In this document: one piece after another, positions 9,982 through 58,832 of the stretch
Numbering within the stretch: the first letter of the stretch is position 1
How the letters are laid out: each line of letters opens with the position of its first letter
IMG/VR virus record: IMGVR_UViG_3300046543_000266
Location: 124,001-188,000 of that record
Length of the DNA: 64,000 nt
Strand: one strand, 5' to 3'
The notes under the pieces: generated by a model
What the model saw: the letters and a program-made list of their open reading frames with translations, nothing else
What the model was told of the DNA's origin: nothing
The model's database searches: none
Translations under genes and position numbers: made by a program

Positions 9982-10000
9982 GCATCTCACAGAGAACAAT

Positions 10001-12736: not shown

Positions 12737-12744
12737 GAGATAGC

Positions 12745-12945
12745 ATGTCCCAGCCAGTAGCAGACGGGGTGGCCCAATTCGCGTTCGCGTGTCTTGGGGA
12801 CCCCTATGTGGTGATTCCAGCCAGTGCCGCGACCCCGAAGTACAACAGCTTCCCGTTCGCTGTAGAGGGTGAAGTGTACAACGACGGGTCCGTGGGATTG
12901 TCTGCCAACAGTCAGCAGCAGCCGATCGTCATGATCTGTATGTAA
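12745..12945 (+). CDS. Small fibre-associated protein
   Basis: SD aggag. Similar size and position to 7623..7829. Confidence 0.55.
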   Translation: MSQPVADGVAQFAFACLGDPYVVIPASAATPKYNSFPFAVEGEVYNDGSVGLSANSQQQPIVMICM

Positions 12946-12966
12946 CGCATTCAAAAAGAGAACCAT

Positions 12967-19896: not shown

Positions 19897-19922
19897 GATA
19901 TGCCTTGAACGTTATACGTTGG

Positions 19923-42863: not shown

Positions 42864-44417
42864 TTACTCTTCTGCGTCGTCGTCCATGGACTTCGACTTC
42901 TTCTGGTTGCGTTTCGCTACGTACAACTCTTCGCCAACGCCGGAAGCCAACTGGCGGAAGCACCACGAACGCAGATTCATAGGCTTGTAACCCATGCGGT
43001 TCGAATGCTCGGTCATCTTGGCCTTGTCGCCGAGGACCCATTCCTTGAGTTGCGCCCAGCTGATGACCTTCTTACCAGCGCCCAGACCCTTGAGGTCGAT
43101 ATACATATTTTTCCGATTCTTGCCGGTGAGCTGGCCCGTCTGGCGGAGATAGTACACCGTGTCGAAGAACGGGTCGAAACCGCGAGCTTCACCACTGCCG
43201 TCTTCTTCCCACAAGCGAACGAAGCCCATACGACCCGGCGTCCACAGCTTGTTCTTGATAGCCTTGAACCGGACGTAGCGATAACGGTCGGTGCCCTCTA
43301 CTTCTACCGACGGCTCGTGCTCGCGACGATCTTCCGCGTCGAACTTCGGATTGAACGGCAGGTTCGAGGCCAACGGCGTCCATTGGATACGCACGTCACT
43401 GTTGAAGCGCAGTGCCTGTCCACCCGGTTCTGCTTCCTTCGGACCGTACATCGCCATCGGAACAGCACGCAGCTGATTGATACCAATGACCGCGACCATC
43501 TTTGATGCCAGACGACCCTTCACGCGCGGCAGATGCTTCGAGAACATACGCGCTTGCAACGCCAGCGAGTTGTCGCCGTCTTCCTTGTCGTTCGACGTCG
43601 GGTTCATTGCCGGATACGAGTCGACCAAGATCAGAGCTTGCAGTGCTCCATCGGGTGCCGGGATCCAGATGCCCTTGCCGTACTTCTTGGACATCGTCTT
43701 GTCGGAATGGCTATCGAGCTTCGCCTTGTTTTCCTTCGTCTCGTCGAACACGAGCCACCACTTACCCGCGATGAACTTCTTGTCCGGCAGCTTCTGCAGC
43801 ATGTCGTGCAACCAGTCGAAGAACTTCTCGCCGATGGTTTCCGCACGATAACGCACACGCGGAGCCACCGTCCACTTGCCGGTTTGCGCGTCCTTCTTGC
43901 CGAACACTTCCTTGATCGAGATCTTCGCGCCGCAGGTACGCAGAATGTTGGCGACGTAGGGCTTGGAGTTCTTGGTCGAACCTTCGTAGTCCGCCAGCCC
44001 GATGATCGGGATGTTGGCGTTGATACCAGCGGCCATGATGTGCAGCGCGCCAGTAGTCTTACACGACTGTTCCGGGCCGAAGTGGGTGTACCATGCCGGG
44101 CGGATACCACCACCCTCGACGAGGTCCAGCGCCAGAATGCCGGTGGACATCGGCGGTACGTCTTCGAGCAAGTCGCTATCGAAGTCTTGACGGCGGCTGA
44201 CGTCGTCGAGCGTATCCGAGTACAGACCAGCGACGTCGAAGGTTACTTCACCCTTCGCACCCTTCTTGCCACGAGGTGCCTTACCTACGACCGCTTCGAT
44301 TGCTTCTTCGACTTCGTCTTGCTTGGCGCGGCGTGCTGGAGCTCGCTTGACTGCTGGCGCCTTCTTGGCTGCGACCTTACGGGCCGGAGCCTTAGCTACT
44401 GGCTTCTTTGTTGCCAT
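42864..44417 (-). CDS. recA: RecA/UvsX-like recombinase
   Basis: STGILALD, GPEQSCKTT (Walker A), LILVDSYPAM (Walker B), LQARMFS, INQLR, PGGQALRFNSDVRI, IKNKL. Start set at ATG 44417. Confidence 0.9.
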   Translation of the reverse strand: MATKKPVAKAPARKVAAKKAPAVKRAPARRAKQDEVEEAIEAVVGKAPRGKKGAKGEVTFDVAGLYSDTLDDVSRRQDFDSDLLEDVPPMSTGILALDLVEGGGIRPAWYTHFGPEQSCKTTGALHIMAAGINANIPIIGLADYEGSTKNSKPYVANILRTCGAKISIKEVFGKKDAQTGKWTVAPRVRYRAETIGEKFFDWLHDMLQKLPDKKFIAGKWWLVFDETKENKAKLDSHSDKTMSKKYGKGIWIPAPDGALQALILVDSYPAMNPTSNDKEDGDNSLALQARMFSKHLPRVKGRLASKMVAVIGINQLRAVPMAMYGPKEAEPGGQALRFNSDVRIQWTPLASNLPFNPKFDAEDRREHEPSVEVEGTDRYRYVRFKAIKNKLWTPGRMGFVRLWEEDGSGEARGFDPFFDTVYYLRQTGQLTGKNRKNMYIDLKGLGAGKKVISWAQLKEWVLGDKAKMTEHSNRMGYKPMNLRSWCFRQLASGVGEELYVAKRNQKKSKSMDDDAEE

Positions 44418-44443
44418 GAGTTCTGTTCCTGGGAAGGGCAAAT

Positions 44444-44483
44444 GAAAAGACCCGCCGCGAACGGTCATCTGTTCGGCGGCGGG
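44444..44483 (-). terminator. Intrinsic terminator/attenuator between ssb-like gene and recA
   Basis: CCCGCCGCCGAAC...GTTCGCGGCGGG followed by TCTTTTC on the - strand. Confidence 0.65.
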
Positions 44484-44529
44484 CCCGAGGCTTCACGATG
44501 AGTTACGTGAGCTATTTACTACTGACGCT

Positions 44530-46068
44530 TTAGCGACGTGCCTTCTTCACCGGAGCCTTCTTACGTGCGGGCGGCTCGTCGTCCTCGTCTTCATCTTCGT
44601 CGTCGAAGTCATCGTCATCTTCATCTTCTTCCTCGACGACCTTCTTGCTTTTGGCTGCCGTCTTCTTGGCGGGAGCCTTGGCTACCGGCTTCTTGGCACC
44701 CTTCTTGGGCGGCGGGGCTTCGTCTTCATCTTCGTCGTCGAAGTCATCTTCATCTTCGTCATCCGAATCTTCGTCCTCGTCCTCGTCTTCCTCGACGGCG
44801 GCCTTCTTGCCCTTGGCTACAGGCTTCTTCGCCGGGGCTTTCTTGGCACCCTTCTTCGGAGCCGGCTCGTCGTCTTCGTCTTCGTCTTCGTCCTCGTCGT
44901 CGAGATCGTCGTCTTCGTCTTCCGAGTCTTGATCATCCTCGTCGTCCGAATCTTCGTCCTCGTCTTCATCATCGCCGAAGTCGTCCTCGTCTTCTTCGTC
45001 TTCCTCGACCTTCTTGCCCTTCTTGGCCGGTGCAGCCTTACCCTTCTTGGGCGGCGGTGCATCGTCCTCGTCTTCATCTTCGTCGTCGAAGTCATCGGAC
45101 TCTTCGTCCTCGTCTTCTTCGTCTTCCTCAGCAGCCTTCTTGCCCTTGCCCTTTGCCGGAGCAGCCTTCTTGGCGGGAGCCGGTTTGCCCTTGCCCTTCT
45201 TCGGCGCCGGTTCGTCGTCCTCGTCCTCGTCTTCCTCGTCGAGGTCTTCGTCCTCTTCGTAGTCGTCTTCAGCAGCCTTCTTGCCCTTCGACTTCACCTT
45301 GATGCCCATGCGCTTTGCCCACGATTCGTAGTCACGCTTGGTTTCTTCTTCCGTCGATTCAGCAGCCAGATCCGACAGGTCCCACGTGAGGAATGCCAGT
45401 TCTTCTTCGGTCAGCGGCGAACGCTCGCCGATCTGCACGGAGTACTGCTCAGCCGGTGCCTTCGTGCTGTCGAACATGATACGCACGTCGCAACCGAACT
45501 TATCGTGGCTGACTGCGTAGGCCGTCGTGCTGCCAGTCTTCTTCGACGTTACCGTGTTGAGGGGCTTCAGTTCAGCCAGCTTGCGGATAGCGCCGCCCGG
45601 CAGTGCCAGAGCAACCCACGGTGTCCACGTTTCCGAGTCCTTGTCCTTGTGGCCCGACTTGCGTTCGGCAGCCGTCGGCTTCGGCAGACGCGACGGTTGC
45701 TGCTTCTGGGCAGCACGCGACAGAGCGTTGCAGTAGAACTTCTTTGCCACCTGAACCGTCTTCTTGTCGTTCTCGCGGATGTCTTCCTCTTCCTGCACGA
45801 TTGCATACCACGGATCGTACTTCGTGGTGTCGAACTGCTGCGTGTCCGGATCGTACGACGGGAAAGAGACCGGGAACTTCGTGGGCTTGCCGTCCTTCGT
45901 CTTCGTCTTGACCCAACCCGTTGCGTAGCTGAACGTCGGTCCGAAGAAGCGGAACGTCACCCACTTCTTTTCCGGGAACTTGAACAGGTTGATCTTGTCG
46001 GTGATCTTCGGTTTGTCCGAACGGTTGCCAGTGCGGACGTTATCGAAATCTGTACCCTTTTGAGCCAT
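44530..46068 (-). CDS. gp32-like single-stranded DNA-binding protein with long acidic/basic low-complexity tail
   Basis: KWVTFRFFGP, KFYCNAL, FGCDVRI..D.TK.....YSV..GERSPLTEEE fit the phage SSB OB-fold pattern; adjacent to recA. Confidence 0.6.
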   Translation of the reverse strand: MAQKGTDFDNVRTGNRSDKPKITDKINLFKFPEKKWVTFRFFGPTFSYATGWVKTKTKDGKPTKFPVSFPSYDPDTQQFDTTKYDPWYAIVQEEEDIRENDKKTVQVAKKFYCNALSRAAQKQQPSRLPKPTAAERKSGHKDKDSETWTPWVALALPGGAIRKLAELKPLNTVTSKKTGSTTAYAVSHDKFGCDVRIMFDSTKAPAEQYSVQIGERSPLTEEELAFLTWDLSDLAAESTEEETKRDYESWAKRMGIKVKSKGKKAAEDDYEEDEDLDEEDEDEDDEPAPKKGKGKPAPAKKAAPAKGKGKKAAEEDEEDEDEESDDFDDEDEDEDDAPPPKKGKAAPAKKGKKVEEDEEDEDDFGDDEDEDEDSDDEDDQDSEDEDDDLDDEDEDEDEDDEPAPKKGAKKAPAKKPVAKGKKAAVEEDEDEDEDSDDEDEDDFDDEDEDEAPPPKKGAKKPVAKAPAKKTAAKSKKVVEEEDEDDDDFDDEDEDEDDEPPARKKAPVKKARR

Positions 46069-48349: not shown

Positions 48350-48823
48350 TTAATAGTCGGCTACTGCGGTGTGATAGCAAACGATGCCGCGTGCGCGCCA
48401 CATATCGACTACGCATTGACGATCGTCGAACGCCATGAACACGTCGGCCAAGTCGAAGCCCGCTTGCTGCACGATCCACGGCTTGTAGTCTTCGTCCGAC
48501 ATCTTCGCAAGACCGTGGAGGCCGGGCGGACGCATCAGCAGTTGATCGTTGGTGATCTTCGGGCCAACGTACTCGTGAATCTGGTGGAGCGTCATACCCC
48601 GATACTCAGGACCGTCGCCACGGCTGGTAACGAACAGCATGTGGAACGCCGGATTGTCGTAGAAGGCGCGGTAGACGTGTGCTCCTTGTGGGATCACCGT
48701 GTCATTGACCGTTGCCTTGATGTAGGCTTCACGATCACCCTTGAAGTAGTGGGCCGTGCGATGGCTGGAGTTGATGAGGCAGCCGTCCAGATCACAGATG
48801 ACCAGCTTGATTGGTGCTTGCAT
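48350..48823 (-). CDS. HAD phosphatase (T4 PNK 3'-phosphatase-like)
   Basis: ICDLDGCL, FVTSR, LLMRP, FDDRQCVVDMWRARG. Confidence 0.85.
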   Translation of the reverse strand: MQAPIKLVICDLDGCLINSSHRTAHYFKGDREAYIKATVNDTVIPQGAHVYRAFYDNPAFHMLFVTSRGDGPEYRGMTLHQIHEYVGPKITNDQLLMRPPGLHGLAKMSDEDYKPWIVQQAGFDLADVFMAFDDRQCVVDMWRARGIVCYHTAVADY

Positions 48824-48856
48824 GAGGGAACCTCGTTGGGTTGGTTGTGGAGATGA

Positions 48857-49309
48857 TCAGTTGGCGGCTGCGGTTTCCGGCGACGCGAGCAGCAGTGCGC
48901 GCTCAGCGATCATGCGTTGCTTGGTGCGACGCTTCTCCAACAGCAGCGCGAAGTAGAAGATCGCGTCGAGAAGCGTTTCGTCCAGCGACTCGGTGGCATT
49001 CGCATCACCTTCAACGTTGAACACGTCGTAGTTCAGCAGTTCGCACTGCGTCTCGAGGCGGTCGATCTTGCGCCAGATCGTGAAGAAGGCACCCGGTCCC
49101 ACACGCTTGCACCACGACGCGCCGTACTCGCTGTCCTTCTTGATGCCGAGGTCGACCAGTTCGTTCATCATCTGGCGGATGTTCTCGAAGTTGGTATGCG
49201 GCAGGTCACGGTCTTGAATCAGCGAGTTGGGGAAAAAGGACACGCCGAAGTCCGGATGCAGCATCGACTGTTGTTTGGGTTGTTGGGGTTGTTTGGGTTG
49301 GTTGCTCAT
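48857..49309 (-). CDS. Nmad1/DUF1599-like all-alpha nucleotide pyrophosphatase
   Basis: KKDSEYGASW.....G.FFTIWRKIDRL...ESLDETLLDAIFY. Confidence 0.7.
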   Translation of the reverse strand: MSNQPKQPQQPKQQSMLHPDFGVSFFPNSLIQDRDLPHTNFENIRQMMNELVDLGIKKDSEYGASWCKRVGPGAFFTIWRKIDRLETQCELLNYDVFNVEGDANATESLDETLLDAIFYFALLLEKRRTKQRMIAERALLLASPETAAAN

Positions 49310-49506
49310 GTTGGTTCCTTGGGTTGGAAGCGGTTCAATACTACGGCGGTTCCGTCAGCGCTAATACGTTGCCACACTAGCGCTTTCTCTTCGACGCTGA
49401 GGAATACCCAATTGTCTACTTCGAATTGGGTACGACCGCAGCCTTTGCATTTGGCGTCGAAGAGCGTGGAACACACGCCGATACATGGGGTGTCGAGTCC
49501 GTGCAT
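49306..49506 (-). CDS. DUF1289-family small Cys-rich (predicted Fe-S) protein
   Basis: TPCIGVCST...KCKGCGRTQFEVDNW...S.EEK..VWQRI; TAATG-coupled start at 49506. Confidence 0.8.
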   Translation of the reverse strand: MHGLDTPCIGVCSTLFDAKCKGCGRTQFEVDNWVFLSVEEKALVWQRISADGTAVVLNRFQPKEPT

Positions 49507-50606
49507 TACTTCATCCGGCGGCCGAGCCACATGATACCGGCGGTCAGCCAGTCGTTGCCGAGCTTGGTGTCGAGGTCAAGCTGGAGGCACTGCTTGTTGT
49601 ACGTGAGCAGAGCCAGACCGCTCGCCGTGTCGCCGGCCTTGTGCATGTTGTAAGCCCGAGCCATCGGCATTGCCACGTAGTCCAGGAACTGGTTCTCGTA
49701 GTCACGGGGGTTCACCTGCTCGGTACACACCGTGACGAAGTCGCGCAGTTCGTCTTCGAATTCATCGCTGTCAGCTTGCAGCGGCAGCGGTGCCACGTCT
49801 TCGTCATACCGACCTGGATAGGCCAGACCACCCTCGACCCCACGGAAGCCGTTGCCCGCGCGCTCGATGAACCGCTTTGTTACGTCGAACTCCGTGTAGA
49901 TGTGCAGGTTGTTGGACACCTGATAGTAGTTGCCAACTTCGACGCCGATCTTGTTCGCCAGATATTCATGGAGGAACGCGAAGTGAACGGCGTTGGCGCC
50001 GTAGGCACCCCAGATCATGTCGTTGCTACGGTTCGTCACCGTGATATTGAGCTTGCCCTGACAGATGTCGACGTAGACCGCGGTATTGCACGGCAGGTCC
50101 TTCGACGTCTGGTTCAGCAGATCCGACGGCTTATACTCGTTGTACATGCCGATGCCGCTTTCGTGCTCGACATCTTCGCCCTTGCCGTCCCACATGCTGA
50201 TCACACAGCGACGGCTGCCCGGATTCTTGCGCAGTTCGGCGATCACGGCGTCCAGCTGATCGTAGCCGAAGTGGTTGCGCCAGCGGAAGCCATACGCGCC
50301 GTTGAGCGTCTCACCGTCGTCGGTGTACTGGAGCATCTGCTTGGCATAGTAGCCGATGGTCGCCACGTCGTTGTTGCCATTCAGCATCCACATGCTTTCG
50401 ATCAGGTGGAGGAACGGGTTGGCGTCGCGAGCCTTGCTGAACGACACACGGTGCATCGGGCTCGACCACATGGTCGTCACCGGACGGGGGAAGCGCAGGA
50501 CCGGACCGTTGCGGCTGTCGGTGACAACACCGTTGGCGAGGATCTGGGGGATGCCAATGCTGAGGGCATGGTCCGGGTTAGCTGCATGAATCACAAACAT
50601 GAACAA
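49506..50606 (-). CDS. Thymidylate-synthase-fold enzyme, probable dUMP hydroxymethylase
   Basis: SRNG, GAYGFRWR, SRRCVISMWD, catalytic DLPCN, NRSNDMIWGAYGANAVHF (Asn at the dUMP-specificity position), NNLHIY. Confidence 0.8.
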   Translation of the reverse strand: MFMFVIHAANPDHALSIGIPQILANGVVTDSRNGPVLRFPRPVTTMWSSPMHRVSFSKARDANPFLHLIESMWMLNGNNDVATIGYYAKQMLQYTDDGETLNGAYGFRWRNHFGYDQLDAVIAELRKNPGSRRCVISMWDGKGEDVEHESGIGMYNEYKPSDLLNQTSKDLPCNTAVYVDICQGKLNITVTNRSNDMIWGAYGANAVHFAFLHEYLANKIGVEVGNYYQVSNNLHIYTEFDVTKRFIERAGNGFRGVEGGLAYPGRYDEDVAPLPLQADSDEFEDELRDFVTVCTEQVNPRDYENQFLDYVAMPMARAYNMHKAGDTASGLALLTYNKQCLQLDLDTKLGNDWLTAGIMWLGRRMK

Positions 50607-50671
50607 CTCCTATGAGAAGGGTTTGATTGGTTGCATACACCAGCTTATTTACGCGCTGGCTTAGAGTTGGA

Positions 50672-51676
50672 TTAGGAGCCTTTGTAGCCGCTGCGAGGCT
50701 CGCCTTCACCGCTGATGACGCGGCAGTATTTGTCGTACTCGCACAGACAGTTGCTGAGGTTCGCTGCGCTCAGGTCGACGAAGCCCGTCTCGAAGCTACC
50801 GGACCACCACTTCGGAGGCACGATCGTCTTCGCCAACTTGTTCATGTCGCGGCGCAGCTTGACCATCGGCTCGTTGAGAGCATTGCCGCGGACGTCGGCT
50901 TTACGACCGCCGCTCATCACTCGGTTCATACCCCGCGTAGTGCCCGGTCCAGGACTAGTGAACGTCTCGATGTCCGTGGCATTCATCAGCCACTTCTGGC
51001 TGTACGTCAGGTCGACGATAACCTGATATGCCATGAACGGTCCCCAACCTTGATACTCACGAAGGGTGGATACGGCCTCTTCCTGGGACTCCTTGAACTT
51101 ACTGCGCAATTCCTTGCGATCCTTCCACAGCGGATCCAGCCCAAAGTACGGGATGTAGTAAGCCTTGCTGTTGTCCGGCGGGTTCGTGCCCTTCGGGAAC
51201 ACGCTGTTGACGATGTAGGCACCGGTGATCAGCTTCTGCTTCTCGTTCTTGATAGCGTTGAACGTGGCGTAGGCTTTCTTGGCACTCCAGCCGTCGACTG
51301 GGAAGCTACCTTCGTCCATCATGCGTTGCAGCGTATCCGGCCAGTTGATGATACGAGCCAGCGCCAGCATGAACCACAGGTCCGGATGGTTCTGGTACGG
51401 CGTGATGATGTTGTCGATTATCCACTTGCTGACCGTGTCGAGCTCACGGTAGATGTTGCAGAAGCGGTAAGCGCGCAGCACTGGATCGTTGGTCCACGGC
51501 TTGGCCTTGCCTACGTGATAGCGCTTCAGGTAGATAGAGTGGCGCTCGATCCAGAACTTCGTGATCGACTCTACCTTGTTTTGATCTTCGGGCTGGAACA
51601 GATAGGGCAGCTTCTTCGGAGCCGCCGCTGGCTGATCAAACAGACTGCCTTGACTGGCGTTTGTTTTGCGCTTCAT
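50672..51676 (-). CDS. aGPT-Pplase1 / 5-hmdU DNA kinase helical-domain family protein
   Basis: ERHSIYLKR...PWTNDPVLRAYRFCNIYRELD, GWGPFMAYQVIVDLTY, GPGTTRG, NCLCEYDKY.R. Start moved to ATG 51676. Confidence 0.8.
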   Translation of the reverse strand: MKRKTNASQGSLFDQPAAAPKKLPYLFQPEDQNKVESITKFWIERHSIYLKRYHVGKAKPWTNDPVLRAYRFCNIYRELDTVSKWIIDNIITPYQNHPDLWFMLALARIINWPDTLQRMMDEGSFPVDGWSAKKAYATFNAIKNEKQKLITGAYIVNSVFPKGTNPPDNSKAYYIPYFGLDPLWKDRKELRSKFKESQEEAVSTLREYQGWGPFMAYQVIVDLTYSQKWLMNATDIETFTSPGPGTTRGMNRVMSGGRKADVRGNALNEPMVKLRRDMNKLAKTIVPPKWWSGSFETGFVDLSAANLSNCLCEYDKYCRVISGEGEPRSGYKGS

Positions 51677-51981
51677 TTGAATAAGCCTCGTGTTCTTTGA
51701 TTGGCAATCGTTGCCAGATACGTACCGTGACAGCGCTTGGGATTGCACCAACATCCGAGACGCTGTCCTTTTAAATCACGGCGGATCTCGTCTCGGGTTG
51801 GTGGCGTTTCTCCGTTAGGTGCTTCGAGCAATCCGTCTAGCCACTTCATGTGCTTGTCGCAGCATTCGGTACGCGTGCCGTGAACGCCGACCACAAAGGG
51901 ATTGCCGTACTTCTGAGGCCTCCCGATGTAGACGTCGTATTCGGATCGCTCGCAGTGGACAACCAACGGATGGTTCGTCAT
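51673..51981 (-). CDS. DUF4326 protein
   Basis: YDVYIGRP..YGNPF...LKGQRLGCWCNPKRCHG; start at ATG 51981. Confidence 0.85.
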   Translation of the reverse strand: MTNHPLVVHCERSEYDVYIGRPQKYGNPFVVGVHGTRTECCDKHMKWLDGLLEAPNGETPPTRDEIRRDLKGQRLGCWCNPKRCHGTYLATIANQRTRGLFK

Positions 51982-52772
51982 AGCAGGAAGTGTTCGGCTT
52001 CGATTGCACGAGTGCGCCAGTACATGCACTGGTCACCGAGCGACATGTTGCGAATGTCGTCTTCGGAATAGTACCCGAGCACCTTGCGCGCCAGCGTGTC
52101 CACGGTATGTGCGTGGGTTGTACCCCTATTTACGCTGCCGACCATTTCGTAGCCGAAGAGCTTGAAATCGCGCTCGTACAGACGGTTGATCAGGCCCAGA
52201 ACATCTTCGTCCAGTTCTTCGATTTTCAGCTTCGGACCAGTCGGATACTTCGTCTGATCCTTCGAGTGGCCGAACTCTTCGGTTTCCACGCCGATCATTT
52301 CACGCACCGTTTTCCAGTCGGCATCAAGGCGCTCGTAGCGGCCGATGAAGTCAGCGTAGCACTTGTTGCCTTGATAGAAGAAGTAATGCTGCGGGCAGAA
52401 GTGCGTGTACTTCCAGTCGAAGCGCACACTTACTTCGTTCAGATTGCGGCGCGCGAATTCGTTGAAGTCGGCATCGGCCGGCAGATTGTGTTGGCGCTTG
52501 TGCTCGGCCCACGAACTGATGAGACGAGTGTACGGATCACGCACGAAGCCGAACTTGAAGTACTCCTCGAAGTAGTGATGGGGCCACACTGCCGGGATGT
52601 CGGCAACGCACACGTGGAACACTTCGATCACACGTTCGAGCTTGGGAATGAACGACTGGTAGTCCAGCTTCAGCGGGTTGCTGTCATACTGGAAGAGGGT
52701 GCGGCGAATCGACGTTCCTGCAACCTTTGGGTTGTGCAAAAACATGAACTTGTTTTGGTCACTGATGATCAT
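51978..52772 (-). CDS. PAPS-dependent sulfotransferase (Sulfotransfer_2 family)
   Basis: 5'-PSB loop FLHNPKVAGTS, 3'-PB motif FVRDPYTRLISSW, HFCPQ, DFIGRYERL. Confidence 0.85.
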   Translation of the reverse strand: MIISDQNKFMFLHNPKVAGTSIRRTLFQYDSNPLKLDYQSFIPKLERVIEVFHVCVADIPAVWPHHYFEEYFKFGFVRDPYTRLISSWAEHKRQHNLPADADFNEFARRNLNEVSVRFDWKYTHFCPQHYFFYQGNKCYADFIGRYERLDADWKTVREMIGVETEEFGHSKDQTKYPTGPKLKIEELDEDVLGLINRLYERDFKLFGYEMVGSVNRGTTHAHTVDTLARKVLGYYSEDDIRNMSLGDQCMYWRTRAIEAEHFLL

Positions 52773-53682
52773 TGAGCAGTCTCTTGAGGTATTCGCGGTC
52801 TTTGTTTTGAAACGCCAGTTCGGCCTTCAGTAGTAATTTACCCTTCTCGCGGAACTTGGCGCGCTTTTCTTTGTCTTTGAACAGGCCCGGTGCGTTCATG
52901 AAGTCGACGCGCAGGAAGGACGCAACGTGCTGAGCTTGCTTGCCGCGCTTGATCAAACCTGGGAACATCACCATCTGGCGCAGGAACGAGTCGTGGACAT
53001 GCTGGACCTTGCGCTCGCTGCCTGCACCACCTTGATCTTTCGGGTCGAAGGTGGTGTTCCACAGCATGTGATAGTCGACGACCGAACGATAGCCGTTGCA
53101 CAGCACCGCCAGATTGTGAACTGTGTCGATGCCCCACAGATCGCGCGTTTCCTTCTTGTCGATGCAGTGCAGCAGGATGTTCACATCGTAGCCCGCGACG
53201 TTGGTACACTTGTGATTCTTGCGCTCCAGTCCCCAACGTTCGATGATGTTCTTGTGCATGAAGTAAGCGCCAGCGCCGACCAGCGCGTTACCCTTGCGGA
53301 ACAGTTGCGGAGCCCTCTTCAGGAACCACTCGTCCGCAGCGCTGATGTCTTTGGTTGCGCCCACGTACTTGTCACCACGACGACCGTAGAACAGCATGTC
53401 GTCCTCTATCACCATTGCGAACTTGGCCCCCTGCTTGCGATGATGATCGAACACCGAGTAGCGCTTGTTCGGCAGCAGGATGTCGTCCTTGGTGCGCAAG
53501 AAGTCCACGTGCTTGGCGTAGGCTTCCTTCTTGTGGGCCGCATGCTCTGAGGCCGGGCACACCACTGTGATGTGCTTCTGCACTTCAGGGGACAGGTAGG
53601 ACAGCGTCTTCTGCCGTCCTACTCGCCCCTTGGTCAGCAGGTAGATGTGGTAGTCTTTATCCATATGATACGTAGGTTCCAA
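52759..53682 (-). CDS. TAGT/JGT-like GT-A glycosyltransferase, paralog A (divergent)
   Basis: IYLLTKGR, KR..V, AMVIEDDM metal-binding motif, C-terminal QGG; the usual ED motif reads GID. Confidence 0.6.
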   Translation of the reverse strand: MEPTYHMDKDYHIYLLTKGRVGRQKTLSYLSPEVQKHITVVCPASEHAAHKKEAYAKHVDFLRTKDDILLPNKRYSVFDHHRKQGAKFAMVIEDDMLFYGRRGDKYVGATKDISAADEWFLKRAPQLFRKGNALVGAGAYFMHKNIIERWGLERKNHKCTNVAGYDVNILLHCIDKKETRDLWGIDTVHNLAVLCNGYRSVVDYHMLWNTTFDPKDQGGAGSERKVQHVHDSFLRQMVMFPGLIKRGKQAQHVASFLRVDFMNAPGLFKDKEKRAKFREKGKLLLKAELAFQNKDREYLKRLLNDHQ

Positions 53683-54175
53683 CCCACCCTTTATGGTGTT
53701 CTTTTATACCGCCGCAGACGGCCTTCATGCAAGAGTAGTCTAGACCGTGAATGCGGCATAGACCCCTGAGATTGTTTCCAATGTAGCTCACCCAACGTGG
53801 AGAAGTCACGTGGTAGCCGCGCGCCAGCTTGTTGCCAATCTCCACATCACCGCCGTTGAGGGCGCGCTCCGACAAGTTCTGAGCGGTTGTGATGAACCGG
53901 CAGTTACCCCAGACGTAATCACCGACGTCACCGAGGCGACCCATCTGGAATTCGGATACTGCCTTTCCGATCTGATCGGGGTGTTTTATACCGGCACGTT
54001 TCGCGAGCTTCATGTACTGGCGGAAGGTCAGCAAACAGACGCAACCACGACGACTAGCATTTCCGCGTAGATCGCGCCATTTCCTTCGCCATTGAAACCA
54101 GTAGCTCTGATCGAAGCTGAGCTTCTGCAGCACACCACAAGCTTCCTCTTCAGTTAGAACACGATCCCGAGTCAT
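53657..54175 (-). CDS. HNH-like (beta-beta-alpha-Me) free-standing endonuclease
   Basis: NASRRG...LLTF, MGRLGDVGDYVWGNCRFITTAQN; C-terminal NUMOD-like HHKGW. Confidence 0.55.
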   Translation of the reverse strand: MTRDRVLTEEEACGVLQKLSFDQSYWFQWRRKWRDLRGNASRRGCVCLLTFRQYMKLAKRAGIKHPDQIGKAVSEFQMGRLGDVGDYVWGNCRFITTAQNLSERALNGGDVEIGNKLARGYHVTSPRWVSYIGNNLRGLCRIHGLDYSCMKAVCGGIKEHHKGWVGTYVSYG

Positions 54176-54942
54176 TAGACCAGCCCTCCGATTTTAGCAG
54201 CACCCCTCCAACTGATGCGAGTGTTGGAATCCGGGTGTTGGGCCGATGGCGGCTTTTCCTTCACGACATCGGGGTGCAGCTTGAGCAGCTTCTGCAGCGC
54301 AGCCTTCGCCATATCACGGGTACGTTCACCTTCTAGCCCACCTGGAGCGTCGGCCTTACGCTGCGCCACCGCCATGTCGTACGTGAGGGCGATTCGCGTT
54401 CCACCCTTGAGTAGTTGGAGCGTGTAGTCTATGTCCTCGTACGGAAATAAACGATCCCACACGATCTTCTTTACGGTGCCGCGGGACATGCCGAAGGCGA
54501 ATCCTAGATGGCTGTTCTCTTTGATACCACCCTTCGGCGCGAAAGCCTTGGTCCCGAGCCCGACGCACTTGTAGCGCGAGCACAGGTCCGGAAGCACCTT
54601 GGTCCAGAAGCCCTTGGTCACTTCGGGAACCGTCGACGCCACGACGTGCTTGTCCTGCTCCTTATCGAAGGCATACAGGTACAGATCGTCGTCGAACATG
54701 AACGCGTACTTGTGCGGGCTGTTCTCCATGATCCACTGGCGCTTGGCACTCAGCGTCTGGATGGACTTCGGCTGCGCCAGCACGTTGACCTTCGGGTAGT
54801 TGGCCTTGAGGATAACGACTTCATCCTTGGGGCATACCAGAGTGACGTGACCGTGCATTCCCTTAGGCAACCGCTCGACCGTCAGCTGGTTGGCAGTACG
54901 GCCCCGCGTTGGGATGTAGATATGATAGTTGATCTTGGACAT
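54175..54942 (-). CDS. TAGT/JGT-like GT-A glycosyltransferase, paralog B
   Basis: IYIPTRGR, LSAKRQWI, FMFDDDL, YEDIDYTLQLL..G, PGG. Confidence 0.75.
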   Translation of the reverse strand: MSKINYHIYIPTRGRTANQLTVERLPKGMHGHVTLVCPKDEVVILKANYPKVNVLAQPKSIQTLSAKRQWIMENSPHKYAFMFDDDLYLYAFDKEQDKHVVASTVPEVTKGFWTKVLPDLCSRYKCVGLGTKAFAPKGGIKENSHLGFAFGMSRGTVKKIVWDRLFPYEDIDYTLQLLKGGTRIALTYDMAVAQRKADAPGGLEGERTRDMAKAALQKLLKLHPDVVKEKPPSAQHPDSNTRISWRGAAKIGGLV

Positions 54943-55676
54943 CAGAAGCGAGCCTCGTTTCTGCGTTGGAATTCCGCCAGATGCTCAGGCGTACCCAGAT
55001 TGGTGAACTGACGGGTCTCGAAGTACCGCAGCGGCAGTCGTGTGATCCCGTTGATGACGGCGCTCAGTGGCAGTTCGGCATAAGGCTTTCTGTTGCGCTC
55101 GGCTTCAAGGAACGCATCCGCCATGTCGTCCACGTTACGGAACCAGTAGCAGCCAGTGTTGATGTAGTCGGAGATCCGCAGCTTCTCGGACAGACCATGG
55201 AACACGGCAGTCTTACGCCACGCCGAATGATACTTGGCTGGATTGTTCAGGAAAGAGTACTCTTCCGACCCGCTCTTGTCTTCGTAGGCAATGACGCCGG
55301 AGCTGCCCTCGATGACTGCTTCGGTCATGGTGTACTTGAGGTCGACGTGTGCCGAGCAGTCACAGTCGAAGATGATGACCGGTCCTTCACGCGGTGGATC
55401 GCACATCAACGCCAGAGCCATCGCGCTGAATGCCGGACCCGGCGAAACGTCTTCGAGATAGTGGACGGCCTTGAAGGTATCCCCGTACTGTGCGAGCAGC
55501 TCCTCGTCCTTGCGCAGGATCAGGATCTCGACGTCCGACGGTTCCAGCCCATACGAGTCGATAACCCATCGGTACATCGGGACGCCCGGAAGTACTTCGA
55601 TGAACGGCTTGCTGACCGGGAATCCCTGCTCCCGGAAGCGTGAGCCCATTCCGGCGGCGGACATTAGATAGCGCAT
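54942..55676 (-). CDS. Sugar-phosphate nucleotidyltransferase (NTP_transferase fold)
   Basis: SAAGMGSRF...GFPVSKPFIEV, IFDCD, SEKLRISDYINTGCYWF, LGTPE. Confidence 0.8.
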   Translation of the reverse strand: MRYLMSAAGMGSRFREQGFPVSKPFIEVLPGVPMYRWVIDSYGLEPSDVEILILRKDEELLAQYGDTFKAVHYLEDVSPGPAFSAMALALMCDPPREGPVIIFDCDCSAHVDLKYTMTEAVIEGSSGVIAYEDKSGSEEYSFLNNPAKYHSAWRKTAVFHGLSEKLRISDYINTGCYWFRNVDDMADAFLEAERNRKPYAELPLSAVINGITRLPLRYFETRQFTNLGTPEHLAEFQRRNEARF

Positions 55677-57202
55677 GATTGCTGTTCCATGAGTTGGTAT
55701 ATTTCTTGGCCCTTCTTGAACAGAGCCAGTTGTCGTTGCAGCGAATCGCTGTGTAGCGGCAGCATTGAGAAGAACAGCAGCGCAGTCATCGCCAGCACTT
55801 CTTGGAAGTCGATACCGAAGCGCTCCCGAACTACGACGCTGAAGTAACTAATGACCTCACGGTTCAGCGGAGGCGGGTTGATTGCCGAGACACTGTAGTG
55901 CCCGGCGATAATCGAGTCGTAGCCAACCATCGAGTGCAGCAGCTTTGCCAACTCGTAGCGGACGTCGCCGTATATGGAGCGCTCGTCGAATCCGTTGAGG
56001 CCGCGCGGGTCAAACACCTTGATGCTATTAGTGCGATGGTCATACGCGATGTTGCTGAAGCACAGGTCACCATGAACTACCGAGATACGGTCAGGGCGAT
56101 CGGGTATCTGTGCGATGCAGTGCTCGGACAATGCCGTAAGCTCAGGCACAATCTCCGAGAAGGTGTCGGACTGGCCGCTGGACTGACCACTGAGTTGTAG
56201 CTGCTGGATGCGCTGGCGAGTCTTACCTTCGATGAGCTCACGGAACGCCGCCGCTTCATGCAGGACGGTCTCTGAGTCGATATGGTGTCCCGGGTCACCA
56301 CCAATGAAGTCGAGGCACTTGTCGATGATGGTGTGCCACACACCAAACTCTTGATTGCCGAACACGTACAGTTCAGCCAGCGTCGGCAGCGGCAGGTACT
56401 CGATCTCGTAGGATCCGTAGCAGTCGTACGACAGCAGGGCCGGAGTGTACTTACGCAGCTTGACTGGGAGGTTGCTGTACCAATCGAACTCAGCGTGGAT
56501 CTTGGCTGGAGTACCACTCTTACTCACCACGTTGTCTTCGATGCGAAGTTGGTTGAAATGCCGCGACGTCAGGAAGTTCTGCTTGGACAGGAAGTAGGTA
56601 GCAGCGTGTCCGAAGTCAAACCAGTCGACGCCGTCCGTATAGTCCTGATAGGTTACGGCGACTTCGTCGTGAATCCAATCCAGGGCTTCACTGATATCGT
56701 CGTCAGGTGCTATCACACGCGCTACCGTGTTGAGCGGAGCCATGAAGTATCCGATGAACACAGCATTGCGGCCGTTATCCAAGCGTATATCCAACCAGTT
56801 GAAGTTACCCGGACGGGTCGCAGCCACCCCGATGCACGGAGTGGTCGCCCACTTGCTGATCAGTGTATCGCCCCACAGAACGTGTAGTTCCACACCCTCA
56901 CAGTTTCGAGCACCGTTCAAGTGGTTCACTATCCTGGTCACCGCATAGTACAGAACGTGCGACAACGGACGTGGGTGCTTGGACGAGTACTCACTTAACA
57001 TGGTCACGCGATCATCGCACGGCGGCATCGGGAAATCTTCCGGATGTGTGACAAATACCTTGTCGAAGTCTGCACCCATCTTCAGCTGATGTTGGATCAA
57101 CGACTTGCCAGCTACCGGAATGCGTGAGGCGGGCAGCTTACCGAACATGAACTGAAGCTCGGGGTTGCACAGCGCTGAAGACAGGATAAGCAGGACCTTC
57201 AT
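55664..57202 (-). CDS. Nucleotidyltransferase-like / APH-choline-kinase-like phosphotransferase fusion (sugar kinase candidate)
   Basis: FGKLP..RIPVAGK, WFDFGH..TY, VVHGDLCFSNI, FDPRG, GDVRYELAKL.HS. Same architecture as so-called capsular biosynthesis proteins. Start at ATG 57202. Confidence 0.75.
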   Translation of the reverse strand: MKVLLILSSALCNPELQFMFGKLPASRIPVAGKSLIQHQLKMGADFDKVFVTHPEDFPMPPCDDRVTMLSEYSSKHPRPLSHVLYYAVTRIVNHLNGARNCEGVELHVLWGDTLISKWATTPCIGVAATRPGNFNWLDIRLDNGRNAVFIGYFMAPLNTVARVIAPDDDISEALDWIHDEVAVTYQDYTDGVDWFDFGHAATYFLSKQNFLTSRHFNQLRIEDNVVSKSGTPAKIHAEFDWYSNLPVKLRKYTPALLSYDCYGSYEIEYLPLPTLAELYVFGNQEFGVWHTIIDKCLDFIGGDPGHHIDSETVLHEAAAFRELIEGKTRQRIQQLQLSGQSSGQSDTFSEIVPELTALSEHCIAQIPDRPDRISVVHGDLCFSNIAYDHRTNSIKVFDPRGLNGFDERSIYGDVRYELAKLLHSMVGYDSIIAGHYSVSAINPPPLNREVISYFSVVVRERFGIDFQEVLAMTALLFFSMLPLHSDSLQRQLALFKKGQEIYQLMEQQSCAI

Positions 57203-57237
57203 TATGACCTCGGATTGTTGTGGGCGTACTACCCTAT

Positions 57238-58116
57238 TTACTTCTGGCTGGCAGCATAGCATTTCTGCCAGTAGATGATGACTTCCTTGCGGGAGATGCT
57301 CTCTTTGTACTTACGGTCCACCACCTTGACGAACGGCTCGTGCGCACGCGCCAGCTTGACCGCAGCGATGTCCGAGCGCTTGATCGTCCGCTCTTCGAAT
57401 GCCCCACCCTTTGCCCCGTAGGACAGCGGGTTGACTACGAAGTTGTTCATGATTAGATTGGGGATGCCGCGCTTGAGCAGATGCAAGGTCACGTTGAAGT
57501 CTTCGCGGAACTTGATCTCGTCGAAGCGGATGTCGTTGTCGAGTAGCGTGCGGCGGTGATGACCCATCGCGTGCATGGCGCGACCGGCTTCCATGGTTTC
57601 CTTGCGCTGCCGATTGTTGTTCTGCCGTGAAGCAATGCAGGTATGCCGATACTCACGTTCGAGCATGGCATCACGGATGAAGTCGAAGCGGCGGATCTTC
57701 TGCTCGTCGGTGAAGCCGTCCTTGAACAGGAACAGCACACCCTTCTTCTTGTACTCAGGCAGCACATCCCACTGCACCTTCTTGGGGTCGAAGGCTCGAT
57801 ACTTCTTGTTGCAGCGCCGGAAGAAGTACATGTCGTCGTCCATCTGGAAGATGTTGTCCGACTTGACGTTCTCGATGATCCACTGGCGCTTCTTGGCGAT
57901 GCCGTCCACCGTCGGATCGTCGATAGCGTACACCAGATCGTGTTTATACTTCTTCTTTAAGGCCCGCGCATCTTCGAGGGTCGAAGTAATGAGCAGTACC
58001 TTGGCACGCAGTTCTTCGGGGATGCCCAAGAACGTCACTTGGCGATCCACCCGTTGATGCGTTGGTATGACCAGCTGAAAGTCTTTATCAGCCACGAGGA
58101 GTCTGTTCTTGAACAT
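57238..58116 (-). CDS. TAGT/JGT-like GT-A glycosyltransferase, paralog C
   Basis: VIPTHQR, GIAKKRQWI, FQMDDDM, FREDFNVTLHLL..G, KGG. Confidence 0.75.
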   Translation of the reverse strand: MFKNRLLVADKDFQLVIPTHQRVDRQVTFLGIPEELRAKVLLITSTLEDARALKKKYKHDLVYAIDDPTVDGIAKKRQWIIENVKSDNIFQMDDDMYFFRRCNKKYRAFDPKKVQWDVLPEYKKKGVLFLFKDGFTDEQKIRRFDFIRDAMLEREYRHTCIASRQNNNRQRKETMEAGRAMHAMGHHRRTLLDNDIRFDEIKFREDFNVTLHLLKRGIPNLIMNNFVVNPLSYGAKGGAFEERTIKRSDIAAVKLARAHEPFVKVVDRKYKESISRKEVIIYWQKCYAASQK

Positions 58117-58127
58117 GCCCGAGCCTG

Positions 58128-58832
58128 TTAGTAGGTGAGAACGAACTTGCGGAATCCGTCAGGTGTGTTCTCGATGGAAGGGTAGCCAGTGGCCTCGACG
58201 TTGTACTTGGTGACGCCGTGCTCGACCGTGGTGGCGGGAACCATCAGACCACGCAGTTCGAAGTCGTCGAACAGATACTCTTCCATCGTGGCTGCGTTGA
58301 TAACGCGCCACTGATTGGTGTGGCCGTCCGAATGCGTGTTGTACCGGATGTAGTACTTCTTGTGACCGGTCGTCACCACCTTGGCGATCTGACGTGCTTC
58401 CTTGTCGAACTCTTCGGCGCTCTCCAGATAGTTGCCGATCTGATAGTCCACCTCATCGTACTTGGGCGGCACGTACATCTTGTTCGTGTCCTCGAAGCGG
58501 CCCTTGTCGATGGTGTTCATCCACACCTTGAACACGTCGTCTGTGTGATCGAGGAACTGTTCTTGGAACGCGTTGCGCGTGGTTGCCAGCGGACACACGA
58601 AGTCGACGATAACCCAATGGCCTTGGAAGTGCAGCATCCGAGCCAACTGACCGAGAGTGGTTGCTTGCTTGACGCGGTCCAGGTTGGAGAAGCCCAGATG
58701 CGACGTGATGGTGCTACGCGCCCAGTCAGCGTTGACGTGGATGGCGTTCAGCTTCTGTTGGAGAACCTTTGCCAACGTGGTCTTGCCGCTGCCGGGCAAA
58801 CCCTGAATGAAGATGACTTTGTTTTGGCTCAT
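58128..58832 (-). CDS. Adenylylsulfate (APS) kinase-like P-loop kinase
   Basis: QGLPGSGKTTLA, NAD.AR, LGFS..DR..Q, VIVDFVCP...R, GRFEDTN; C-terminal extension of unknown fold. Confidence 0.7.
   Translation of the reverse strand: MSQNKVIFIQGLPGSGKTTLAKVLQQKLNAIHVNADWARSTITSHLGFSNLDRVKQATTLGQLARMLHFQGHWVIVDFVCPLATTRNAFQEQFLDHTDDVFKVWMNTIDKGRFEDTNKMYVPPKYDEVDYQIGNYLESAEEFDKEARQIAKVVTTGHKKYYIRYNTHSDGHTNQWRVINAATMEEYLFDDFELRGLMVPATTVEHGVTKYNVEATGYPSIENTPDGFRKFVLTY

Follow-up and report, generated by a model that had tools for sequence, protein, structure and literature searches.

A jumbo phage related to Ralstonia phage RSL1 carries a conserved gene cluster that, in our best reading (probability about 0.5), replaces thymine with 5-hydroxymethyluracil (hmU) and then decorates it with sugars and probably sulfate, which would be a kind of DNA modification not described before. 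The stretch of DNA analyzed, referred to here as the window, spans 64,000 nucleotides, positions 124,001 to 188,000 of the IMG/VR record IMGVR_UViG_3300046543_000266. A preliminary description, made from the sequence alone, had pointed to a thymidylate-synthase (TS) homolog with a catalytic Cys and a uracil-selecting Asn beside an aGPT-Pplase1 gene, in the absence of the known amino-acid-transfer partners. We found that this observation is correct: both ORFs lie where the description placed them, and its end coordinate 51676 is the ATG of Met27, the likely true start of the aGPT-Pplase1 gene. The two genes end a ten-gene minus-strand cluster (48350-58832) that is syntenic with RSL1 ORF230-238. 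The genes of this region are as follows (window coordinates).

48350..48823 (-), HAD phosphatase of the PNKP type, downstream of the TS homolog; possibly works on the nucleotide pool, with uncertain membership in the pathway.
49506..50606 (-), TS homolog, predicted dUMP hydroxymethylase; likely start ATG at 50600, catalytic Cys173 codon at 50088-50090, uracil-selecting Asn205 codon at 49992-49994.
50672..51754 (-), stand-alone clade-1 aGPT-Pplase (Pfam HMUDK_hel); likely start ATG at 51676 (Met27), invariant Cys338-Glu339 codons at 50738-50743.
51978..52772 (-), PAPS-type sulfotransferase (Sulfotransfer_2).
52759..53682 (-), TAGT-like DNA glycosyltransferase 1.
53657..54175 (-), HNH-endonuclease-like ORF inserted between two glycosyltransferase genes; probably a homing endonuclease and not part of the pathway.
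54175..54942 (-), TAGT DNA glycosyltransferase 2.
54942..55676 (-), nucleotidyltransferase-like protein (243 aa).
55664..57262 (-), bifunctional nucleotidyltransferase plus APH-type kinase, predicted to make an NDP-sugar from a free sugar.
57238..58116 (-), TAGT-like DNA glycosyltransferase 3.
58128..58832 (-), divergent APS-kinase-like P-loop kinase, predicted to supply PAPS for the sulfotransferase.

The TS homolog matched PF00303 (E 1.2e-21; 77.5 bits against a cut-off of 24.3) and phrog_5131 (E 1.7e-111), with DLPCN at residues 170-174 (window 50085-50099) and GANAVHF at residues 203-209 (49980-50000). In alignments to PDB thymidylate synthases, the Asn of GANAVHF fell on the Asn of the TS motif P-F-N-I-A-S, which is N177 in E. 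coli. In a 12-sequence alignment, Cys173 lay in an invariant column, and the Asn205 column held Asn in the dUMP enzymes (M6-like, ViI, SH-Ab 15599 and a Bacillus phage ThyA) but Asp in the two dCMP-type controls (Xp12 and a Bacteroides phage protein annotated as dCMP hydroxymethylase). The best PDB match by sequence was MilA CMP hydroxymethylase (2e-16), against about 5e-8 for E. coli-type TS. The protein is 55% identical to RSL1 ORF230, and by tblastn it most resembles the TS homologs of phages shown to build their DNA from hmdU: 42% over its full length for M6-like, 33% for ViI-like and 27% for SH-Ab 15599 phages (PMC5889632, PMC8989533, PMC13458397). It also shares with these enzymes a one-residue insertion before the Asn and a long C-terminal extension. 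These similarities bear only indirectly on whether the product is hmdUMP rather than dTMP, which is inferred here. The HAD phosphatase gene (PF25109, E 7.1e-12) is conserved beside the TS homolog in RSL1 and in the phage loci L010, L131 and L078.

The neighboring protein matched PF18723 HMUDK_hel over residues 60-347 (E 3.8e-48; 164.7 bits against a cut-off of 25, profile positions 4-276 of 281) and phrog_2396 (E 2.4e-74), as a single domain without a P-loop. PF18723 is the present Pfam name of aGPT-Pplase1, as shown with an M6-like control locus and by source names. C338, E339 and K342 were invariant in 57 and in 79 homologs. An AlphaFold2 model (pLDDT 88) gave as its best PDB fold match the AADT PUGT (8z2n_B, Z 10.8), tied with HhH 8-oxoG glycosylases (Z 10.3-10.6); the predicted fold is thus helix-hairpin-helix and DNA-glycosylase-like, although these values are moderate for an all-helical protein.

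The lack of classical partners, which the preliminary description could state only for the window and had named as a point to check, held for the complete genome (217,605 bp, direct terminal repeats). Profile searches of the genome returned no PF18748 5-hmdU DNA kinase (5-HMUDK), PF18724 amino acid:DNA transferase (AADT), PF18757 Nmad5 or PF04055 radical SAM (rSAM) gene, whereas the control locus L005 scored 65 bits for the kinase and 160 bits for the AADT. HMMs that we built for the M6-type AADT, PLP enzyme, rSAM enzyme and Nmad5 also found nothing. The genome contains no other TS homolog and no ThyX, but it does contain one dCMP deaminase, outside the window (G000 C1:65629-65985, in the coordinates of the complete genome).

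In place of these partners, the cluster holds three glycosyltransferases of the TET-associated family PF20691 (41, 130.8 and 44.4 bits against a cut-off of 27.5), with E 2.7e-10, 8.3e-38 and 2.4e-11 for glycosyltransferases 1, 2 and 3, respectively. All three matched phrog_842 (E 2.6e-41, 1.3e-46 and 6.3e-48). No TET/5mYOX dioxygenase was found among the cluster proteins scanned; in our reading the TS homolog supplies the hydroxymethyl base instead. The HNH-like ORF matched phrog_2081 (E 1.5e-7), has no counterpart in RSL1 and is present in phage locus L013. The bifunctional protein gave weak APH and fructosamine-kinase Pfam hits in its C-terminal half; in the ESM Atlas it matched (TM 0.85-0.89, feature score 0.98-0.99) clusters with the NTP_transferase + APH architecture, some of them named capsular biosynthesis proteins, and RSL1 ORF236 is annotated as NDP-sugar pyrophosphorylase-like. 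The 243-aa protein has no Pfam match of its own, but the syntenic RSL1 ORF235 is annotated as a nucleotidyl transferase, the gene at the same position in phage locus L132 has a weak NTP_transf_3 hit, and it co-occurs with the glycosyltransferases in 6 of 80 loci (see below).

The sulfotransferase matched PF03567 (E 1.1e-23; 85 bits against a cut-off of 22) and phrog_3347 (E 2.8e-47). The HNPKxAGTS and RDPxxRxxS columns, which correspond to the 5'-phosphosulfate and 3'-phosphate binding motifs, were invariant or nearly so in 27 sequences. All of its best fold matches were PAPS sulfotransferases, with heparan-sulfate enzymes first, though weakly. Its nearest bacterial relatives (40-47% identical) lie in O-antigen/polysaccharide clusters with GLF and glycosyltransferases, and GLF also sits beside the sulfotransferase gene in phage loci L010, L131 and L132. 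The APS-kinase-like protein scored 56.6 bits against PF01583 (E 3.9e-15, cut-off 21.1) but 52 bits against TIGR00455, below the equivalog cut-off of 138.7. The P-loop GLPGSGKTT and LGFSNLDR are present, whereas DGD reads NAD, FISP reads FVCP, and the C-terminal half differs from canonical CysC. Its best PDB matches were all APS kinases. No ATP sulfurylase was found in the phage, so that only the APS-to-PAPS step would be supplied by the phage.

We next asked whether these genes travel together. The sulfotransferase recurs with HMUDK_hel and the TS homolog in about 15 distinct phage contigs, nearly all of which also hold glycosyltransferases and the APS kinase. Among the 80 nearest HMUDK_hel loci of IMG/VR, 46 have the 5-hmdU DNA kinase and 34 of those also the AADT, eight have sulfotransferase, TAGT and APS kinase, and seven have a TAGT only. 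No locus holds a glycosyltransferase together with the kinase or the AADT. However, the sulfotransferase-linked HMUDK_hel proteins form one clade, so part of the co-occurrence is shared ancestry. Complete genomes with a TAGT, HMUDK_hel and the TS homolog but neither sulfotransferase nor kinase were also found; in this view, glycosylation of hmU would need no leaving-group activation.

Taken together, these results suggest a thymidine hypermodification pathway of a glyco-sulfo type. The genes, their motifs, the missing partners, the synteny and the co-occurrence are observed, whereas every enzymatic step is inferred. From homology and context, the dCMP deaminase would feed dUMP to the TS homolog, which would make 5-hmdUMP, and hmdU would enter phage DNA in place of T. 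From family membership, one TAGT-type enzyme would place a sugar on the 5-hydroxymethyl group after replication and the other two would extend or vary the glycan, using NDP-sugars made by the phage's kinase/nucleotidyltransferase pair. From motifs, co-occurrence and bacterial relatives, the sulfotransferase would sulfate the DNA-bound glycan with PAPS made from host APS by the APS-kinase-like enzyme, although its acceptor is predicted from context alone. No chemical data on the DNA of this phage or of RSL1 were found in the library searched. HMUDK_hel, a predicted base-flipping HhH-fold protein with a Cys-Glu pair like the AADT nucleophile, accompanies the TS homolog in every branch (kinase/AADT, glycosyltransferase only, glycosyltransferase plus sulfotransferase, or neither). 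It may perform a step on hmU DNA that all branches share, such as processing or reading the hmU left unmodified, without needing a phosphorylated substrate. The expected benefit is protection of phage DNA from host nucleases.

The interpretation in the preliminary description is thus only partly supported. The dUMP type of the TS homolog, its aGPT-Pplase1 neighbor, the absence of the amino-acid branch and sugar chemistry as the most likely fate of hmU all agree with our results; for the last, three TAGT/phrog_842 glycosyltransferases and NDP-sugar synthesis genes lie in the same operon-like cluster. In contrast, the idea that hmU activation is diverted is not supported, as no activating kinase exists here and TAGT-type enzymes glycosylate a hydroxymethyl group directly. 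Nor is the suggestion that the APS-kinase-like gene is a nucleotide or DNA kinase supported, in part because the gene travels with a sulfotransferase that was not weighed. The alternative that two modifications coexist at different T contexts is beyond what sequence can judge.

Other explanations appear less likely. The strongest, though still unlikely, is that only the TS homolog, HMUDK_hel and perhaps the TAGTs act on DNA, while the sulfotransferase, APS kinase and sugar-nucleotide genes modify a non-DNA glycan (host LPS or EPS, or a virion glycoprotein) and share the same early or middle operon by chance. The O-antigen affinities of the sulfotransferase favor this view. Moreover, a 97%-complete RSL1-like phage (G002, locus L019) keeps the GLF-sulfotransferase pair with no TS homolog, TAGT or HMUDK_hel, so the sulfotransferase can work outside an hmU pathway, and genome G011 (locus L078) keeps the TS and HMUDK_hel core with no sulfotransferase, so the two sets can be separated. 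Yet in the roughly 15 contigs the sulfotransferase lies within a few kb of HMUDK_hel and the TS homolog, often next to or overlapping them (L007, L009), and all 8 sulfotransferase-bearing loci among the 80 also carry a TAGT and the APS kinase. In addition, the surrounding glycosyltransferases are of the DNA-glycan family rather than polysaccharide polymerases, and no flippase, polymerase or lipid-carrier genes were seen in the cluster. An ordinary dTMP synthase in a phage with normal T, and a cluster that has nothing to do with DNA bases, is the least likely reading. Cys173 and Asn205 are also what a true thymidylate synthase has, and this is the only TS/ThyX in the genome, but the protein is far closer to the hmdU-phage enzymes than to ThyA and is always paired with HMUDK_hel, a family otherwise seen only in hmU hypermodification clusters, and TAGT glycosyltransferases need a hydroxymethyl acceptor.

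It is similarly doubtful that the APS-kinase-like protein is the missing hmU DNA kinase or a nucleotide kinase, with a pathway that starts like the classical one. It is the only P-loop kinase in the cluster, is divergent and gave a marginal hit (E 1e-3) to our HMUDK HMM, and HMUDK_hel normally goes with a kinase. However, it matched PF01583 over the cut-off and not PF18748, its APS-kinase motif equivalents are conserved across the phage clade and absent from the M6-type kinase, and there is no AADT to use a phosphorylated base. It is also present in all 8 sulfotransferase-bearing loci and absent from the 7 with only a glycosyltransferase. Finally, sulfate could take the place of phosphate as the leaving group: the sulfotransferase would sulfate the 5-hydroxymethyl group of hmU, or its first sugar, and HMUDK_hel would attack C6 with its Cys, expel the sulfate and install another group. 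The sulfotransferase gene is next to, or overlaps, HMUDK_hel in the window, L007 and L009, just as the kinase gene is next to it in M6-like phages; the kinase and the sulfotransferase never occur together among the 80 loci; and HMUDK_hel has the invariant Cys-Glu pair and an AADT-like predicted fold. This radical reading is nevertheless improbable, because the relatives of the sulfotransferase go with GLF and sugar genes, which points to a carbohydrate acceptor, HMUDK_hel works in genomes with neither kinase nor sulfotransferase, its near-invariant residues are the same in all contexts (only positions 329 and 332 differ), and the two genes are not adjacent in several loci.

That the DNA of RSL1-like phages carries sulfate esters at some stage, whether as a stable decoration on an hmU-linked glycan or as a leaving group, seems slightly more likely than not. 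Either way it would be the first sulfated natural nucleic acid, and would show that a phage encodes its own PAPS supply for DNA chemistry. Known phage DNA hypermodifications add sugars, amino acids, polyamines or deazapurines; no sulfate ester on DNA turned up in the library searched, and we know of none. Because the cluster is present in a cultured phage (RSL1), this possible new chemical class is directly accessible to nucleoside mass spectrometry. The comparison also splits hmU phages into two exclusive branches, kinase/AADT and glycosyltransferase, and shows that the uncharacterized clade-1 aGPT-Pplase is the one constant partner of the hydroxymethylase, even in complete genomes that have neither branch. 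This narrows its possible roles, one of which is the still unknown step that turns leftover hmU into T (PMC5889632). Strongly anionic, bulky DNA adducts would bear on restriction and CRISPR evasion, on DNA packaging and on enzyme tools for labelling DNA.

The closest known systems are the thymidine hypermodification pathways of phages M6, ViI, PhiW-14, SP10, PaMx11 and SH-Ab 15599 (dUMP hydroxymethylase, 5-HMUDK and AADT, with or without PLP, rSAM or FAD enzymes). They share a TS homolog of the same subfamily, a clade-1 aGPT-Pplase gene beside it, a dCMP deaminase in the genome and post-replicative chemistry on hmU in DNA (PMC8989533), but here the kinase, AADT, PLP, rSAM and Nmad5 genes give way to three glycosyltransferases, NDP-sugar enzymes, a sulfotransferase and an APS kinase. 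PUGT (PaMx11 gp46; clade-2 aGPT-Pplase, PDB 8z2n) is the best structural match of the HMUDK_hel model, with 214 residues aligned, an HhH-glycosylase-like helical fold and a Cys near the C-terminal helix; the aligned ranges place C338 at the position of Cys247 (PMC11472151). However, the two are only 8% identical, hhalign against a single AADT sequence found nothing, the motif is LCExDK rather than ETxLCK, and the clade-1 protein M6 gp55 was dispensable for glycinyl-T formation (PMC8989533). The glycosylated 5-hydroxymethylcytosine of T-even phages and of TET/5mYOX phages (bioRxiv 10.1101/2023.12.21.572611) involves several paralogous glycosyltransferases of the same family, accessory sugar enzymes including an APH-type kinase, and a hydroxymethylpyrimidine, as is predicted here for the acceptor. 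In our case the base is predicted to be uracil, made before replication by a TS homolog rather than by TET, and HMUDK_hel, a sulfotransferase and an APS kinase are present; that preprint contains no word beginning with 'sulf'. Base J of kinetoplastids (beta-D-glucosyl-hydroxymethyluracil) resembles the predicted core product, a sugar on the hydroxymethyl group of hmU in DNA (PMC13229309), but it is eukaryotic, is made by JBP dioxygenases acting on T in DNA and by a different glucosyltransferase, and carries one glucose and no sulfate. Finally, the O-antigen/polysaccharide clusters of Pantoea and Burkholderia share the Sulfotransfer_2 enzyme and its pairing with GLF, but they have ABC transporter or flippase genes and lipid-carrier glycosyltransferases, whereas the phage loci instead have the TS homolog, HMUDK_hel and TAGT genes among the replication genes.

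The window comprises bases 124001-188000 of a 217,605-bp IMG/VR virus record that has direct terminal repeats and is rated 100% complete. At the DNA level, its only relative among 50,697 cultured-phage records is the jumbo Ralstonia phage RSL1, with 72.8% identity over parts of the cluster, and the region is syntenic with RSL1 ORF221-254. A tblastn search of the same 50,697 phage records with the sulfotransferase likewise found only RSL1. The thymidylate-synthase (TS) homolog and its neighbor HMUDK_hel form the downstream end of a tight minus-strand gene cluster, which reads as follows in order of transcription.

58128-58832 (-), an APS-kinase-like protein
57238-58116 (-), a TAGT-like glycosyltransferase
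55664-57262 (-), a 531-aa protein
54942-55676 (-), a 243-aa protein
54175-54942 (-), a TAGT
53657-54175 (-), an HNH-like insert
52759-53682 (-), a TAGT-like glycosyltransferase
51978-52772 (-), a Sulfotransfer_2 protein
50672-51754 (-), HMUDK_hel, with its likely start at the ATG at 51676
49506-50606 (-), the TS homolog, followed by a 150-aa ORF
48350-48823 (-), a HAD/PNKP-type phosphatase

The preliminary description of a TS homolog that keeps Cys and Asn and sits beside an aGPT-Pplase1/HMUDK-helical gene, without the known amino-acid-transfer partners, was correct. The ORF at 49506-50606 matches PF00303 (E 1.2e-21) and phrog_5131 (E 1.7e-111), with DLPCN at residues 170-174 and GANAVHF at residues 203-209. 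Against solved structures, its best sequence match is the CMP hydroxymethylase MilA (2e-16), whereas E. coli-type thymidylate synthases score about 5e-8; in those alignments, the Asn of GANAVHF falls on the Asn of the TS motif P-F-N-I-A-S. In an alignment of 12 sequences, this column is Asn in the window protein, RSL1, four metagenomic relatives, an M6-like phage, ViI, SH-Ab 15599 and a Bacillus phage ThyA, but Asp in Xp12 (a 5-methylcytosine phage) and in a Bacteroides phage protein annotated as dCMP hydroxymethylase. Thus, the Asn/Asp rule behaves as expected on controls. The window protein also shares a one-residue insertion before the Asn and a long C-terminal extension with the enzymes of the hmdU phages. 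By tblastn, it is 55% identical to RSL1 ORF230 (annotated as deoxyuridylate hydroxymethyltransferase in AB366653), 42% identical over its full length to M6-like phages, 33% to ViI-like phages and 27% to SH-Ab 15599. The DNA of those phages has been shown by experiment to be built from hmdU (PMC5889632, PMC8989533, PMC13458397).

The neighboring ORF is a single-domain PF18723 protein (E 3.8e-48). Scanning an M6-like control locus showed that PF18723 'HMUDK_hel' is the present Pfam name of the former aGPT-Pplase1, that PF18724 'ADDT' is the former aGPT-Pplase2 (the AADT), and that PF18748 is the kinase. The absence of the classical partners, described beforehand for the window, holds for the whole genome: PF18748, PF18724, PF18757 and PF04055 gave nothing, and HMMs that we built from 130 loci for the M6-type AADT, PLP enzyme, rSAM enzyme and Nmad5 also gave nothing. 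The genome has one TS homolog, no ThyX, and a single dCMP deaminase, which lies outside the window at 65629-65985 of the complete genome, about 108 kb from the TS homolog. It is therefore not clustered with the TS homolog as it is in Xp12 or the M6-like phages.

The three glycosyltransferases all belong to PF20691 and to phrog_842, annotated as beta-glucosyl-HMC-alpha-glucosyltransferase; these are the families of enzymes that put sugars on hydroxymethylpyrimidines in DNA. NCBIfam named neither the 531-aa nor the 243-aa protein. The 531-aa protein, however, has the NTP_transferase + APH-kinase architecture (TM 0.85-0.89 to such clusters), and we read it as a predicted sugar-1-kinase/nucleotidyltransferase that makes an NDP-sugar, while the 243-aa protein is nucleotidyltransferase-like. 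The 171-aa ORF between two TAGT genes has an HNH-endonuclease-like C-terminus (phrog_2081, E 1.5e-7). It has no counterpart in RSL1 but does have one in the phage contig L013, and is probably a homing endonuclease insert. The HAD phosphatase of the PNKP type just downstream of the TS homolog is conserved there in RSL1-like phages, including one with no sulfotransferase, which has two copies; it could conceivably deplete dTMP, or remove the 3'-phosphate of PAP. A scan for promoters and terminators found fewer sites than chance, so it says nothing about operon structure. Elsewhere in the window, a strongly negative AT skew (−0.36) at 44001-46000 lies over the 511-aa ORF 44530-46068, whose RSL1 counterpart is annotated as a single-strand DNA-binding protein, and looks like a low-complexity stretch.

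The sulfotransferase has invariant HNPKxAGTS and RDPxxRxxS columns, which we read as the two PAPS-binding motifs. All its fold matches are PAPS sulfotransferases, with heparan-sulfate enzymes first, though the matches are weak (Foldseek E 0.014). The P-loop kinase scores over the cut-off for PF01583, and every PDB match is an APS kinase. Across the phage clade it keeps the P-loop, NAD in place of DGD, L(G)F..DR, and VDFVxP in place of FISP, none of which is found in the M6-type hmU kinase. Because it falls below the NCBIfam equivalog cut-off, we call it a divergent APS kinase, not CysC. The phage has no ATP sulfurylase.

We next asked how these genes are distributed among other phages. Scanning IMG/VR with the sulfotransferase alone found nothing, and an alignment was needed. 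Among IMG/VR and metagenome contigs, the close relatives of the sulfotransferase nearly always lie within a few kb of HMUDK_hel, the TS homolog and glycosyltransferases, and usually the APS kinase. This is seen in the window, in RSL1, and in the loci that we labeled L007, L009, L010/18, L013, L014, L015/16, L021, L022, L023, L026, L029, L058, L131 and L132. The sugar part varies, and may be a set of TAGTs with the kinase/nucleotidyltransferase pair, GT-B enzymes (L009), or UDP-galactopyranose mutase plus a 430-438-aa protein (L010, L131, L132). Starting instead from HMUDK_hel, we classed the 80 nearest IMG/VR loci by their partners.

Partners found within 10 kb of HMUDK_hel in the 80 nearest IMG/VR loci, with the number of loci in each class.
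5-HMUDK kinase (34 of these also have the AADT): 46
Sulfotransferase + TAGT + APS kinase: 8
TAGT only: 7
None of these: 18
APS kinase only: 1

None of the 80 loci combines a glycosyltransferase with the kinase or the AADT. These counts are not independent events, since the sulfotransferase-linked HMUDK_hel proteins form one clade, and the ranges searched were 10 kb on each side, except where whole records were checked. The single APS-kinase-only locus (L126), which also has the TS homolog, seemed to pair an APS kinase with HMUDK_hel without a sulfotransferase, but it turned out to hold a canonical CysC-type APS kinase (DGD, LGFT..DR, FISP and KGLY motifs) 9 kb away at 19652-20227, with no sulfotransferase inside the 10-kb flanks searched. 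Two complete genomes of the TAGT-only class have no sulfotransferase and no kinase anywhere. A complete 243-kb RSL1-like genome (L078; IMGVR_UViG_3300017565_000017) has only the HMUDK_hel + TS pair (9893-12025), a minimal core, with two HAD_PNKP genes (12600-13064 and 13465-13917) and a dUTPase_2 gene nearby; it has no sulfotransferase, and no glycosyltransferase or kinase within 10 kb. In contrast, a 97%-complete 230-kb jumbo phage (L019; IMGVR_UViG_3300029993_000005) carries adjacent UDP-galactopyranose mutase (GLF) and sulfotransferase genes (8698-10891), but no TS homolog, TAGT or HMUDK_hel anywhere. Finally, the nearest bacterial homologs of the sulfotransferase (Pantoea and Burkholderia, 40-47% identical; L138:8001-9005 and L139:8001-9068) lie in O-antigen/polysaccharide loci with GLF and several glycosyltransferases, which suggests sulfated galactofuranose-containing glycans in those bacteria.

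HMUDK_hel is the constant partner of the hydroxymethylase in all branches. Twenty-six residues are at least 95% conserved across 79 distinct sequences from all contexts, including GPG (269-271) and C338-E339-K342. Only positions 329 and 332, just before the Cys338 helix, clearly separate the sulfotransferase-linked clade, which has Ser/Asn, from the kinase-linked proteins, which have Glu/Asp. The AF2 model (pLDDT 88) is an HhH-glycosylase-like helical fold, and its best PDB match is the AADT PUGT (8z2n_B; Foldseek rank 1 with probability 0.93 but a weak E-value of 0.036; Z 10.8 over 214 residues). This Z is moderate for an all-helical fold, and the match is tied with 8-oxoG glycosylases. The aligned ranges (model 49-347, chain 4-256) would put C338 on the catalytic Cys247 of PUGT if the last helix aligns without gaps, which we infer from the end points of the alignment only. 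An hhalign comparison of the HMUDK_hel profile with one AADT sequence gave no significant match, so that the link between clade 1 and clade 2 rests only on the fold match and on local motif likeness. We conclude from these predictions that HMUDK_hel is probably an enzyme that flips hmU out of the helix and attacks C6, and that its task does not depend on which decoration a phage makes. M6 gp55, which by gene order in M6-like phages is the clade-1 protein, was not needed for glycinyl-T formation (PMC8989533). One candidate role is the still unidentified step by which leftover hmU becomes T (PMC5889632).

In our reading, the sulfotransferase comes from a lineage of carbohydrate sulfotransferases and goes with sugar genes, and glycosylation of hmU needs neither kinase nor sulfotransferase. 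The most economical pathway is therefore dCMP to dUMP to hmdUMP, then hmdU DNA, then glycosyl-hmdU DNA, then sulfated glycosyl-hmdU DNA, with PAPS made by the phage kinase from host APS. Whereas the genes, their motifs and their co-occurrence were observed in the sequences, every step of this pathway, from the hydroxymethylase activity to the sulfation, is inferred from homology and context, and none is shown chemically. We regard the hydroxymethylase as likely, DNA glycosylation as probable, and sulfation of the DNA glycan as only slightly more likely than not, and we put a probability of about 0.5 on the whole.

The interpretation offered in the preliminary description, that hmU activation is diverted to sugar chemistry, or that two modifications coexist at different T contexts, and that the APS-kinase-like gene could instead be a nucleotide or DNA kinase, was supported in part: sugar chemistry is the most likely fate of hmU, but a diverted activation was not supported. 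We considered whether this gene is the hmU kinase, but given its APS-kinase matches and motifs and the absence of PF18748, we ranked this idea low. That the sulfotransferase acts on a non-DNA glycan is unlikely but remains alive, because L019 shows that the sulfotransferase can act outside an hmU pathway. A link between polyamines and the pathway was also entertained, as homospermidine synthase is functional in RSL1 (PMC9992855), but this genome has no match to it.

Full-text literature searches found no paper on RSL1 DNA modification or on sulfated DNA, and the jumbo-phage review does not mention this system. The literature searched links no sulfotransferase or APS kinase to DNA hypermodification, and reports neither the exclusive kinase and glycosyltransferase branches nor a kinase-free clade-1 aGPT-Pplase. 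The gene families themselves are known: RSL1's genes carry generic annotations, and glycosyltransferases next to thymidylate-synthase homologs have been noted in metaviromes (bioRxiv 10.1101/2023.12.21.572611). Although the system is built from these known families, its predicted product, sulfated DNA, would be chemically unprecedented.
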